Of a stretch of DNA of 64,000 nt, positions 5,734 to 61,391 are shown in pieces. The stretch comes from Thalia democratica (Eukaryota), in NCBI GenBank assembly GCA_965202585.1, contig OZ241834.1, positions 34,348,001 through 34,412,000 on the forward strand. The letters are read 5' to 3'. The position numbers were made by a program, and so were the translations under genes. Below the pieces are notes generated by a model that saw nothing but the letters and a program-made list of their open reading frames with translations, was not told the origin of the DNA and ran no database searches. Position 1 is the first letter of the stretch; each line of letters begins with the position of its first letter.

Positions 5734-7369
5734 TCACCAACGATCATTCCACACCAAATAAATAACAGAACCATTTTGAATGTTGTAGTCAGACAAAGCC
5801 CTTGCATATTCCAATTTTTCTCCAGCCCAAATCAGATGATGCTTGCGTGGTGGGATACCTGAAAATATTCAAATATTGAAAGTAATAATACATTTAAGCT
5901 TTTTTTTTCACAAATTAGTTAAAGTATATATTAAATTTTTTATACTACTTCAACATTTACAAAAAGTTAAAAATATTACATTAAGCTCAATATTTTAACC
6001 TCAATTATGTAATATTAAGGTATTTTCTTAATGTATGTTAAAAGTATGAGTACTGTTCAATTCATAATACACATTAAAGCTATTATATTTCCAAATTTCG
6101 TAGATTTAAAACTACTTTTAGATGGGACATTTTGAACATATTTACCAAGTTCTTGATATATTATCTTAGAAATTGTCTTAAATCTACAAGCTTAACAAAC
6201 CTTCTTTGTCTTGAATCATGGCTTTGACATTTTCAATGGTGTCAGAAGCTTCAACTTCCAATGTGATGGTTTTACCAGTTACAATTTTCACAAATATTTG
6301 CATTTTTATCTATTGATAAGTTTTTAGTAAAGTCTAACTTATAGTTAAAAAATTGCATAAAACCTTGTAAACTATTTTTAAAAACAACATATACGAGCTT
6401 TAAAATGTTTCGTAAAGTTTTAATATACTACAAAAAATATAACGAAAATACTTAAGAGCATTGACAATTTAATACATGAATTAGTGTTTTGTTAAAAAAA
6501 AAACAATTAAAATTAAAAGAGTCATTTTCTAGTACAAAAATTATTATTACAAAGCAATTGTTGTTTTTAGCATTGTAATCTATTTACACATTTTTTATTC
6601 TATAATGTATTTAATGTTTTTGAACTAAAATAATTTGTTATCCATTGCTATCCTTGTTTAAAAAACTTGTGCTAATGTTTCTGACTTAAGTCAAATATTT
6701 ATTTTTAATTTAATATCTATTTAGGAAAAACAAACTAATATGTAGTTTATTTTCATTCGATGCTAAATTTTCAATGCATTAAAAAGTGAGCATTGGGTAG
6801 TTATTTAAAAAAAACAAACTTATACTACACAATTGTTTTTTCAATAATATTTAGTTATTTGTTTGCTTATATTTTTAATATAACATACTAACTGCAGTAA
6901 GAGTTGATCCATTCTCAACTCCATAATCAGACAAAGTAGAAGGCCTTGAATTTCTTTCATCTTTCAATTCATCTTCACTAAAAAACAAGCGTACTTGATC
7001 TAACGAGTGACCTGAGTTTACAAATAATAACATGAATTTTGTATAAAAATAAGAAAATAGGCCTTGTTTATCTTGGCGAAAAAGTTTTTACAAAAAAATA
7101 AACTTTTATAACCTTTACTTAAGCAACGTAAAAAGTAACAACTAAGTAGTTTATTTAAAAATAAACAATAAATCCTATACTAGTTAAAGACTTTTGATGT
7201 ACATTTCATTGTTTAACATTTTAGTTATATAATTTTGCCAGTTAATTTATTTAAAAAAAGTTTTACTACCTTTTTCTTTAGCTTTATTTCTAAGCTCTTC
7301 AATGCTGTCGGAAGCTTCAACTTCCAATGTGATGGTTTCACCAGAAAAAGTTTTCACAAATATTTGCAT
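5734..7369 (-). CDS. Di-ubiquitin-like protein, minus copy 1 (intact, 150 aa)
   Basis: Exons 7369-7270, 7011-6893, 6309-6201, 5858-5734, all GT-AG, phases 1/0/1. [150 protein letters not shown]. Confidence 0.82.
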
Positions 7370-8721
7370 TTTTATTTTGAAAAGCTGTTAAGATATTTGT
7401 ATTTATAAATCGGTGTCCCACAAAATGCTACCAAGTAAATCTAGTTTTTCTATTTTATTTTTAAGCAAAAATGAATATAAGAAATCAACTGATATTTACT
7501 TATAAAATAAAATGACAACCAAAACACTTGTTTTACTTTCCATACAACTGTTCCTATAAAACTTAATTTTAAATACCAAAATCACTTATTTATTAAACCT
7601 TTTGTCTGTGGTATAAGCTTATCTACAATAATAGTAAATTAAAAGTAAATTTATGTTCAACTTTTTTAAACTAAAAAAGTTTTATTATGGAGCAACATAA
7701 TCTTGACCTTTTAAATAAGTTTGTTTTTATGTCTGTTCAACAGAAATTGTGAAATGTATAATAATCATTGACTTTACTGGAGTTTTAATTTTATACTTTT
7801 GTGTTCATAAGTCACATTTTAAGTTTAAAAGCAATAAAAATCTATGTTTGAATTTGTGCTGTACTTAGTTTAAAAATATTTAAGTACCAGCTTATGATAT
7901 GAAAACAATAAATTTGAACTATCTAAGAAAAACTGGTTACGCTAAAAAAGTAGTACTATCAATTTTTAAAATAAAACATTTTCTATGTAATATACTTTTA
8001 TATATTTGAAGATTGTTGACTGTATTGTTTTCATCAGCTATCAAATAGCTTTTAAAATCTGCTAATTAATAAAAACGGTTCTATAATTTTATCTTTTTGA
8101 AGAACTTAGGTAATGCGCTTACTTATCAATTTTAATATAAATAAGCATATAAAGTATCGTGCTTGATATAAACATTTGATAAACAAAAGTAAAAAATTCC
8201 TGACACAAAATTAAAACTAATATAATACTTTTATGATCAGTTTCATACTTTTGCCCGTACTGTGGCTAAATTTTCTATAAATTTATTGAGATCAAAAAAG
8301 TCTTCATAGTTCAAATTACAAATCTCCTTAACTTAAAATTTTATTTATAACTTCAGAAACTTACTATTTTATATTCGTAAAATTGTTGTGCTAGTTAGTT
8401 GTCATTTTGATAAACTACTTTATAAGTTATACAACTGTTCTTTTTAATGTTAATTTTCAATGTTTTTTTTTTAAGTCTTTAACAAGCCAGACTTACCTAA
8501 AATAAATTCGCGGGCTGTATAAATGAAAAATAAATTGTACAATAAATATTTCATAACTATTAAATAAAACTTTTTATTTTTTAAAGGTAGAAAACCTTCT
8601 TTAAGCTAAAATCTTTAATAAAAATATCATTTTAAAATAACTATTGTATTACAAAAACTGAATTAATAGCAAAAGATTGCTTTTAATATACTGTTTTTGT
8701 TTCTTTTGTATAACATTATTC

Positions 8722-59718: not shown

Positions 59719-61391
59719 TCAAACAAAAAGTCTCCGAATACATTTTACAATCACCGAGTAAATAACAGAACCATTTTGGATGTTGTAATCAGACAAAGCC
59801 CTTTCATATTCCAATTTTTCTCCAGCCCAAATCAGATGATGCTGGTATGGTGGGATACCTGAAAAATATTCAAATATTGAAAGTAATAATACATTTAAGT
59901 TTTTTTTTCACAAAATTAGTTAAATTATATATTAAAATTTTTATACTATTTCAACATTTACAATAAGTTATAAACTTTACATTAAGCTCAATATTTTAAC
60001 CTCATTTATGTAATATTAAGGTATTTTCTTAATGTATGTTAAAAGCATAAGTACTGTTCAATTCATAATAATCATTAAAGCTATTATATTTCCAAATTTA
60101 GTAGATTTAAAACTACTTATAGATGGGACAGTTTGAACATATTTACCAAGTTCTTAATTTATTATCTTAAAAGTTGTATATCTACAAGCTAAACAAACCT
60201 TCTTTGTCTTGGATCTTAGCTTTGACATTTTCTATGGTGTCAGAAGCTTCAACTTCTAATGTGATGGTTTTACCAGTCAATGTTTTCACAAAAATCTGCA
60301 TCTTTCTCTATTAATAAATTTTCAGTTAAGTCTAACTTATAGTTTAAAAATTGCATAAAACCTTAAACTATTTTTTAATAAGAGTGAATACAAAAAACAC
60401 CATATACGAGCTTTAAAATGTTTCGTAAAGTTTTAATATACTTCGAAAAATATAACGAAAATAATATAAGAACTTTGACAACTTCATACATGAATTAGTG
60501 TTTTGTTAAAAAAAACAATTAAAATTAAAAGAGTCCTTTTCTACTACAAAAATTATTACTACGAAGCAATGTTGTTTTTAACATTCTAATCTATTTACAC
60601 ATTTTTATTTTTTAATGTATTTAATATTTTTGAAGTAAACTAGTTTGTTATCCATAGCTATCCTTGTTTAAAAAACTTGTGCTAATGTTTCTGACTTTAG
60701 TCAAATGTTTATTTTTAATTTAATACCTATTTAGGAAAAAAAAAAACTAATATGTAGTATATTTTCATTCGATGCTAAATTTTAAATGCATTAAACAGTG
60801 AGCATTGGGTAGTTATTTAGAAAGATAAAACAAACTTATATTACGCAAAAGTTTTTTTAATAATATATAGTTATTTATTTGCTTATATTTTTAATATAGA
60901 ATACTAACTGTTGTAAGAGTTGATCCATTCTCAACTCCATAATCAGACAAAGTAGAAAGCCTTGAATTTCTTTCATCTTTCAATTCATCTTCACCAAAAA
61001 ACAAACGTACATGATCTAACGAGTGACCTGAGTTTTCAAATAATAACATGAATTTTGTACAAAAATAAGAAACTAGGCTTTGTTTTTTATCTTTGCGAAA
61101 AAGTTTTTACAAAAATATAAACTCAACTTTCATAAACTTCATTAAGCAACGTATTAAGTAACACTTAAGTAATTTACTCAAAAATAAAGCATATATCCTG
61201 TACTAGTTAAAGACATTTTATGCACAACTGTTTAAAACATCGGTACAACGTTTATCTTCCCAGTTAATTTATTTAAAAAAAGTTTTACTACCTTTTTCTT
61301 TAGCTTTATTTTCAAGATCTATTATGGTGTCAGAAGCTTCAACATCCAATGTGATTGTTCCTAGAGTCAATGTTTTCACAAAAATTTGCAT
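59719..61391 (-). CDS. Di-ubiquitin-like protein, minus copy 8 (intact, 155 aa)
   Basis: Exons 61391-61292, 61027-60909, 60307-60199, 59858-59719. [155 protein letters not shown]. Confidence 0.8.

Follow-up and report, generated by a model that had tools for sequence, protein, structure and literature searches.

Do the ubiquitin-like units that follow one another in the genome of the tunicate Thalia democratica stand as separate genes, or are neighbouring units spliced into single proteins of two domains? The question is raised by a stretch of 64,000 nucleotides (nt), C10:34,348,001-34,412,000 in an 802-Mb assembly, which we call the window and whose positions are used below unless another contig is named. 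Immediately downstream of a polyubiquitin gene, the window holds an array of ubiquitin-like (UBL) units, a first domain (D1) being followed in most loci by a second (D2). An earlier note had described the array as a set of spliced genes for two-domain proteins. Our analysis indicates that the array is a lineage-specific, ubiquitin-made family of coding genes in birth-and-death turnover. The pattern of conservation around the junction further suggests that cis-splicing joins D1 to the next unit in most loci and that the joined form is the main product, a reading that we hold at somewhat better than even odds (probability about 0.55).

Results

One exon architecture in ten loci

Loci were found by tblastn with the spliced model of the first locus (L1) and then described by explicit exon models. 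The window contains ten complete loci, with exons of 100, 119, 106–109 and 122–140 nt, and the single architecture claimed for them in the earlier note was borne out in every detail. Exon 1 is 100 nt long in 10/10 loci and ends at a phase-1 donor after Gly34. Exon 2 is 119 nt long, again in 10/10, and the donor hexamer that follows codon 73 reads GTTAGT in eight loci and GTGAGT in L8 and L11. The AG acceptor of exon 3 lies 6 nt before the D2 start, or 3 nt before it in L2, L8 and L11, and D2 is interrupted by a phase-1 intron at Gly35 in all ten. D1 comprises 73 codons, with a five-residue insertion after the position of ubiquitin Arg54 and one residue fewer in helix 1, while D2 comprises 72–80 codons and is nearer to ubiquitin than D1.

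Eight of the ten joined models have neither a stop nor a frameshift and give proteins of 148–155 amino acids, as had been claimed. Six are on the minus strand: L1 (7369-5734; exons 7369-7270, 7011-6893, 6309-6201 and 5858-5734; 150 amino acids, ending WNDRW), L4 (21860-20204; exons 21860-21761, 21492-21374, 20788-20680 and 20328-20204; 150 amino acids), L5 (27298-25475; exons 27298-27199, 26926-26808, 26160-26052 and 25599-25475; 150 amino acids), L9 (47660-45971; exons 47660-47561, 47296-47178, 46555-46447 and 46095-45971; 150 amino acids), L10 (52768-51086; exons 52768-52669, 52415-52297, 51671-51563 and 51210-51086; 150 amino acids) and L12 (61391-59719; exons 61391-61292, 61027-60909, 60307-60199 and 59858-59719; 155 amino acids). 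The other two, L8 (41124-42553; exons 41124-41223, 41445-41563, 42276-42381 and 42432-42553) and its sister L11 (54885-56336; exons 54885-54984, 55213-55331, 56039-56144 and 56215-56336), are on the plus strand and give 148 amino acids each. The junctions 6893 to 6309, 21374 to 20788 and 41563 to 42276, which had been proposed for mapping, recur in the exon models as exact positions.

The remaining two complete loci, both on the minus strand, have an intact D1 and a damaged D2, in which ATT replaces the initial ATG and a common in-frame TAG shortens the joined models to 123 and 124 amino acids. They are L2 (11904-10296; D1 exons 11904-11805 and 11546-11428, exon 3 10801-10696, exon 4 from 10342) and L6 (32548-30957; D1 exons 32548-32449 and 32195-32077, exon 3 31464-31356, exon 4 from 31003). 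Besides the ten, the window has two truncated or odd loci on the plus strand. L3 (16482-16779; exons 16482-16587 and 16658-16779) is an open orphan D2 of the L8/L11 type whose D1 is missing, the upstream half having been replaced at 15794/15795 by the tail of an inverted D2 of the minus-strand type. L7 (35894-36687) consists of a lone D1 exon 1 (35894-35993) and then a divergent, stand-alone one-domain UBL (36376-36478 and 36554-36687).

Frames are kept open by selection

D1 and D2 are genuine coding units with frames kept open by selection, because indels and stops are few against the rates in the introns and against the number that the substitutions predict. Indels were counted in 14 loci, the coding sequence (about 435 nt) being set against the three introns and the upstream region. 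There is no event in the 219 nt of D1 and a single one, in a multiple of three, in the 216 nt of D2, against a density of 10–15 events per 100 nt for the three introns and 7 per 100 nt upstream, a regularity that chance would by no means give. At least 188 substitution events among 16 copies of D1 predict at least 9.8 new stops and none is observed (P=6e-5), and for D2 at least 6.1 stops are expected and one is found.

At the amino-acid level, constraint is weak and the sequences are changing fast, D1 being the more constrained unit and never dead. Omega, estimated by maximum likelihood under a GY codon model, is 0.41 for D1 and 0.81–0.88 for D2, in contrast with 0.024 for the polyubiquitin repeats next to them; the array units lack the extreme purifying selection that is characteristic of repeats in a polyubiquitin precursor. 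Differences at codon positions 1:2:3 amount to 88:72:100 in D1 and 62:37:53 in D2, as compared with 6:0:88 in polyubiquitin. Pairwise NG86 ratios of nonsynonymous to synonymous divergence (dN/dS) were set aside in favour of the maximum-likelihood values, their dS lying above intron divergence, probably through a site-counting bias. Between the array and a second cluster of the family, on contig C8, exon identity (0.69–0.82) is below intron identity (0.76–0.85).

These figures bear on the view that the array is a graveyard of functionless duplicated polyubiquitin fragments, open only through youth. The near-neutral omega of D2, the near-even spread of substitutions over codon positions, the several truncated or stop-bearing copies and run searches that returned no RNA run for expression would all fit such a graveyard. 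However, copies diverge by up to 25–30% in DNA and yet carry 0–1 coding indels where intron rates would give 20–30 per domain. Stops are far below expectation, D1 has an omega of 0.41, exons of 100 and 119 nt have kept their lengths in 16 D1 units across two chromosomes, and the architecture recurs in Tara Oceans metagenome contigs that are about 85% identical to the window. We therefore regard the graveyard as very improbable.

The rapid turnover that had been suggested for the family is evident in both births and deaths. Numbered on in window coordinates beyond the window end, a near-identical copy of L1, E71 (70260-71892), differs from it by 0.4–0.7%, and the copy E76 (74798-76407) has the same D2 ATT and TAG as L2 and L6. 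Deaths are represented by L3, by L7 and by the dead D2 shared by L2, L6 and E76. The TAG-bearing D2 copies (about 74798-74905 in E76) have no frameshift and a pairwise omega of 0.22–0.70 on 7–12 changes; either they are very young or the shortened domain is still somewhat constrained. When paralogues are compared, their identity profiles prove mosaic and the breakpoints lie in different introns; the halves have therefore been shuffled by gene conversion or unequal exchange. A fixed boundary of exchange between D1 and D2 was considered and rejected, since the breakpoints are scattered over different introns; they do not separate the models. A kept frame, fast change and turnover of copies together give the look of a diversifying family, which does not by itself imply a function.

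The exon 2–exon 3 junction

Around the junction, variation is lowest in the donor hexamer GT[TG]AGT. It has 0.33 extra states per site, as compared with 0.73 for the final 30 nt of exon 2, 1.0 for +7 to +12 and 1.56 for +13 to +30, and it fits the donor consensus better than do the donors of introns 1 and 3 (GTAGTA and GTTTGT). The hexamer occupies the Val70–Ser71 codons of D1, and the Ser71 codon, AGT, differs at all three bases from the TTG that encodes Leu71 in the genome's own ubiquitin repeats. L8 and L11 have reached a full consensus, GAG/GTGAGT with a cag acceptor (aacag/AAAATG in L8; the slash marks the splice site), through a 3-nt change that keeps the frame. On the acceptor side, ATAG/A at −10 to −6 of the next ATG does not vary among 12 units, some of them copies from C8 and from Tara Oceans DNA whose flanks have diverged. 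The spacing from AG to ATG is 3 or 6 nt in 18/18 junctions, so that the frame is always kept. The two D1 loci at about 129.8 and 136.1 kb, which no further domain follows, are also without the donor, the hexamer being GTGTTA instead.

The same junction can be read in another way, as the space between separate one-domain genes of two alternating types. D1 would then end at VSILY-stop and be polyadenylated in intron 2, D2 would have a promoter of its own in the same spacer or be trans-spliced to the spliced leader at the AG, and the two-domain protein would be absent or a minor isoform. Several observations count in favour of this alternative and against a joined main product. The ATG of each unit has been retained; it stands in A-rich sequence and is preceded, at a distance of about 40 nt, by a TATAA-like box. 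In most loci the frame reads through only 4–5 codons past exon 2 before the stop (VSILY, or VSMLY in L1), and AATAAA often follows about 20 nt beyond. The read-through Leu codon at +10 to +12 varies synonymously only (CTA, CTC, CTG, TTA), and such a pattern may mean that in some transcripts the read-through is translated. D1 is intact in 18/18 copies, including those with a dead D2 (L2, L6 and E76), a lost donor (E79, CTTAGT) or no D2 at all, and D1 therefore does not need D2. D2 is itself near-neutral at the amino-acid level, and both lineages that have lost its ATG carry other defects: the TAG in L2, L6 and E76, and loss of the donor together with an omega of 1.37 for the D2 pair in E64 and E79. 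Finally, stand-alone one-domain UBLs are present in the array, namely the one in L7, the orphan L3 and another at 119110-119888.

The AG just before each ATG resembles a trans-splice acceptor, and the genome has the spliced leader of Ciona. The 16-nt leader (ATTCTATTTGAATAAG), the sequence of which was checked against PMC1488885, occurs with a following GT in more than 100 exact copies genome-wide and, with up to two mismatches, in 2650 copies as compared with about 440 for a control. Given this abundance, Thalia very probably uses Ciona-type spliced-leader trans-splicing. A Hydra spliced-leader sequence had no match. On contig C26, most of the listed copies of the leader with GT are spaced by 15,085 bp (7129, 22214, 37299, 52384 and so on), which suggests that the spliced-leader gene sits inside a long tandem repeat.

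What is known of trans-splicing in tunicates nevertheless speaks against separate genes. An acceptor with an upstream donor is cis-spliced in preference to being trans-spliced (PMC1488885), and a near-consensus donor and a competent acceptor on the same pre-mRNA should thus be cis-spliced here. The cistrons of Ciona operons lie immediately next to each other, without intercistronic DNA and with an acceptor that has no paired donor (PMC1488885), whereas the array has gaps of 589–715 nt between the end of exon 2 and the next ATG, with a consensus donor upstream. Against separate genes, too, the donor hexamer is more conserved in its nucleotides than the neighbouring codons, the Ser71 codon is changed at all three bases, and the read-through in L8 and L11 would add 37–61 unconserved codons (61 in L8).

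Intron 2 offers a further comparison, since a separate D2 gene could have its promoter there. Apart from its last 45 nt or so, its conservation near D2 (0.82) is that of the middle of the intron (0.81), and no colinear similarity links it to the region upstream of D1, the flank downstream of D2 or the polyubiquitin 3' flank. The idea that intron 2 is an old upstream region thus holds for the last 45 nt or so and fails for the rest, which has no homology to the region upstream of D1.

Sequence collections and sequencing runs gave no trace of the joined product, which also weighs against it as the main one. Among 5.8 billion proteins, none of 82–262 amino acids shares words with residues 24–80 of the model; this search of a 90% collection covered proteins from 82 amino acids upwards, and one-domain products could therefore escape it. 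In the contigs of JGI metagenomes, there were no matches for the exon 1–exon 2 junction or for a 26-mer of exon 2. Run searches gave no RNA run, and the three runs that carry the locus are even over introns, free of joints and DNA-like, which makes them uninformative on splicing. Weighing both sides, we consider separate one-domain genes possible but somewhat doubtful.

A compromise would have both products made, a one-domain D1 mRNA with intron 2 retained and early polyadenylation and a two-domain mRNA, the balance varying by subfamily. It would reconcile the conserved donor and acceptor with the short, partly codon-like read-through and the nearby AATAAA, and it fits the survival of D1 without D2. 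L8 and L11, with stronger splice sites and no usable read-through stop, would then differ from the minus-strand family, which retains both options. The coding signal of the read-through comes from about nine substitution events, and we find this arrangement rather improbable. Joining of D1 to the next unit by cis-splicing, as the main product in most loci, is the reading that we prefer and follow below.

Origin from the neighbouring polyubiquitin gene

The 3' end of the polyubiquitin gene lies at 469-2865 on the plus strand, with an internal exon at 469-696, made of the C-half of one repeat and the N-half of the next, and a terminal exon at 2735-2865 that ends in RGGL-stop. With the flank fetched, the whole gene spans window coordinates -11472 to 2865 and has nine repeats, each interrupted at Gly35 by a phase-1 intron, the internal exons being exactly 228 nt long. 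Nine intron-split repeats are an unusual structure among animal polyubiquitin genes. The introns measure 625–3288 nt.

Derivation of the array from this local ubiquitin gene is well supported by comparison of the sequences: the D2 intron has the same Gly35 position and phase 1 as the polyubiquitin repeats, its first 14 nt are the start of the last polyubiquitin intron, and the ancestral C-terminus of D2 is LRLRG-stop. The derivation from ubiquitin that had been proposed earlier is thus upheld, also by an identity of 56–59% between the model and linear di-ubiquitin. The family branches off Thalia's own ubiquitin and is independent in origin of ISG15.

Other features of the window were recorded alongside. 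The DNA has 22–27% G+C, and scans of the 64 kb with Rfam and for tRNA gave no match. An element resembling a miniature inverted-repeat transposable element (MITE), with 14-nt terminal inverted repeats (CAGGGTTTCCCAAA), lies at 1143-1516, and one MITE-like copy is inside the last polyubiquitin intron. The motif CAGGGTTTCCCAAA occurs seven times in the window, where none would be expected, and is also found near 17073, 38377, 42843, 49530 and 56630; the plus-strand loci L3, L8 and L11 are each followed, about 290 nt downstream, by a single match. At 13480-13720, an insert of about 240 nt that is rich in G+C stands within DNA of 24% G+C and has the appearance of a short interspersed nuclear element; it yields a spurious open reading frame (ORF) of 73 amino acids, and ARAGORN called no tRNA there. 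From the genome at large, an HSP70 ORF of the mitochondrial type has 81–87% identity to named ascidian proteins of Phallusia, Clavelina, Ciona, Styela and Botryllus, which places the host among the tunicates; with the related copies in Tara Oceans DNA, it is taken to be a pelagic one.

Extent of the family and its relatives

The array extends about 80 kb past the window end, and the second cluster lies on contig C8. Exon 2 of the D1 type has 18 copies in the genome, of which C10 carries 16, in a span of 136 kb, and C8 the other two, and 0/18 contain a stop. The family thus comprises at least 18 ubiquitin-derived coding units, mostly paired. The C8 locus (C8:8384001-8394000, at about 3700-6553 on the minus strand of that stretch) is a chain of D1, D1 and D2 with all frames open, in which GTTAGT again forms the donor at the end of each D1 and every following ATG has an AG 6 nt ahead of it. 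We regard this chain as a candidate three-domain gene. The C8 cluster is the more divergent of the two, and further fragments lie at 8714-9660 of the same stretch.

At the distal end of the array, the two D1 copies at about 129.8 and 136.1 kb are the most distal on C10 and have no following domain. The one-domain UBL at 119110-119888 is very close to ubiquitin, and several lone exons for the N-half of ubiquitin are found on both strands between 119110 and 140615. In two distal D1 units the N-half is identical or nearly identical to ubiquitin and the C-half is of the D1 type.

Outside Thalia, an exhaustive search with the exon-2 peptide had as its sole specific match a 57-amino-acid ORF call on Tara Oceans DNA, and the whole-protein database search was dominated by polyubiquitin, with a best identity of about 60%. 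Given the null result in the protein collections and this one match, the family looks unannotated and, so far, confined to the tunicate lineage, in agreement with what the earlier note had supposed. One Tara Oceans scaffold of 1177 nt repeats its first 77 nt in its last 77 nt; it therefore implies a tandem series in which units of about 1.1 kb contain D1 alone, with an acceptor of the intron-2 type before each D1 exon 1, and a relative sampled by Tara may possibly carry a poly-D1 gene.

Features of the predicted proteins

The prediction of two ubiquitin-fold domains agrees with the profile and structural results. The PF00240 profile matches the L1 model in two stretches (E=5.2e-35, 119.5 bits) and also matches the L8 model (E=2e-13). 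AlphaFold2, run with an alignment, gave two beta-grasp domains, each with the order strand-strand-helix-strand-strand, in which beta5 of D1 runs straight into beta1 of D2; its predicted local distance difference test score (pLDDT) of 87.9 and predicted template modelling score (pTM) of 0.61 come from an alignment made of polyubiquitins, so that the fold is partly built in. A model from the single sequence was poor (pLDDT 46.7).

Gly-Gly occurs nowhere in the models and is missing from both domain ends. D2 ends before the stop in LRLRG, LRLSA, LSLFG, WNDRW, VVFR or IRRLFV, the D1 read-through would end in VSILY, and the junctions between domains read ..TLTA-(I/R)K-MQIF.. or ..SE-K-MKLI... Lys48 is replaced in 15/16 D1 and 10/14 D2 copies, Lys63 is replaced in all aligned copies of both domains, in D1 most copies have Phe in place of Ile44, and hardly any copy retains His68. 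Without Gly-Gly and with these losses of Lys48 and Lys63, the proteins would be neither processed, activated by E1 nor conjugated, and would not be extended into Lys48 or Lys63 chains. Proteins that can be neither cleaved nor activated would in turn act by non-covalent binding.

Discussion

The family described here is a tunicate-specific, tandemly amplified, Gly-Gly-less derivative of ubiquitin, and its products probably have two domains. If cis-splicing does join D1 to the next unit, the downstream AG would plausibly be the former trans-splice acceptor of a one-domain gene, since the genome very probably uses Ciona-type spliced-leader trans-splicing. D1 would have gained a donor on its Val70–Ser71 codons, and this donor would have captured the AG downstream. 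The outcome would be in-frame proteins of 148–155 amino acids with two domains and almost no linker, and with three domains at the C8 locus. As modelled, the joined product would be an analogue of Met1-linked di-ubiquitin that has no linker, cannot be hydrolysed and presents altered recognition patches, and the two-domain proteins could serve as stable mimics, decoys or competitors for ubiquitin-binding proteins or deubiquitinases.

Linear di-ubiquitin is the closest structural counterpart and accounts for the top 30 Foldseek matches to the model, the domains being head-to-tail in both. Where linear di-ubiquitin has residues 70–76 of its first domain, however, the array has one or two linker residues. 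The adjacent polyubiquitin gene shares the Gly35 phase-1 intron and its start with D2, but it differs in having no intron between domains, where the array has an extra one. In a polyubiquitin precursor, repeats are joined Gly76 to Met1 for release by deubiquitinases, whereas the array models have no Gly-Gly at these joins. Duplicated ubiquitin genes with repeats that have drifted from the canonical sequence, as the array units have, are also found in Arabidopsis (UBQ7-9). Their repeats share a single exon, and the processing site is mostly retained, in contrast with the intron-separated, tandem units of the array and their lack of Gly-Gly.

The earlier note had likened the family to ISG15 and FAT10, and this likeness is confined to architecture. 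If the splice is real, the array products resemble ISG15 in being lineage-restricted, fast-evolving two-UBL proteins of about 150–165 amino acids. However, ISG15 has 21–23% identity to the model in structural alignment, has LRLRGG as its C-terminus and a dedicated E1-E2-E3 for its conjugation, whereas the array is multi-copy and has no Gly-Gly. FAT10 (UBD) and the C-terminal pair of OASL are likewise tandem UBLs with a short linker, at 23–25% identity, but FAT10 has a Gly-Gly end and UBA6 as its activator, the OASL pair belongs to a larger protein of enzyme-like character, and both are single-copy vertebrate genes. A C-terminal Gly-Gly is common to the conjugatable modifiers ubiquitin, NEDD8, ISG15 and FAT10 and is what the array family is without. 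The UBL pair of OASL is unconjugated, as would be the case in the array family. ISG15 is reported only in vertebrates (PMC9722776).

Fast evolution and turnover of copies would fit, by analogy, families driven by conflict, whether immune or reproductive, and a role in host defence or immunity is speculation. Ascidian fertilisation employs an extracellular ubiquitin system (PMC10341865). One could imagine the array products as diversifying mimics of di- and tri-ubiquitin, uncleavable and unconjugatable, born when a donor on Val70–Ser71 captured a spliced-leader acceptor, and as parties to an arms race, in which they might for instance be decoys for the deubiquitinases and ubiquitin-binding effectors of pathogens or selfish elements, or might act in tunicate fertilisation. 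They would then be an invertebrate-chordate counterpart of ISG15 and FAT10 that arose independently and whose mechanism of fusion can be read. We offer this scenario tentatively and think it unlikely as a whole.

If the units are separate one-domain genes, the array is still a fast-evolving, ORF-maintained expansion of UBL genes in a poorly studied chordate lineage, and as such of moderate interest. If the splice is real, ubiquitin-like proteins of two and three domains would have been invented independently in Thalia, outside the vertebrates, and recently enough for the steps to be read: polyubiquitin would have been duplicated, Gly-Gly lost and a donor gained within a codon, and this donor would have captured an acceptor of the kind that stands ready before every ATG in a genome with trans-splicing. 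The family would then be a natural set of non-hydrolysable variants of linear di-ubiquitin and a test case for gene fusion in trans-splicing genomes.

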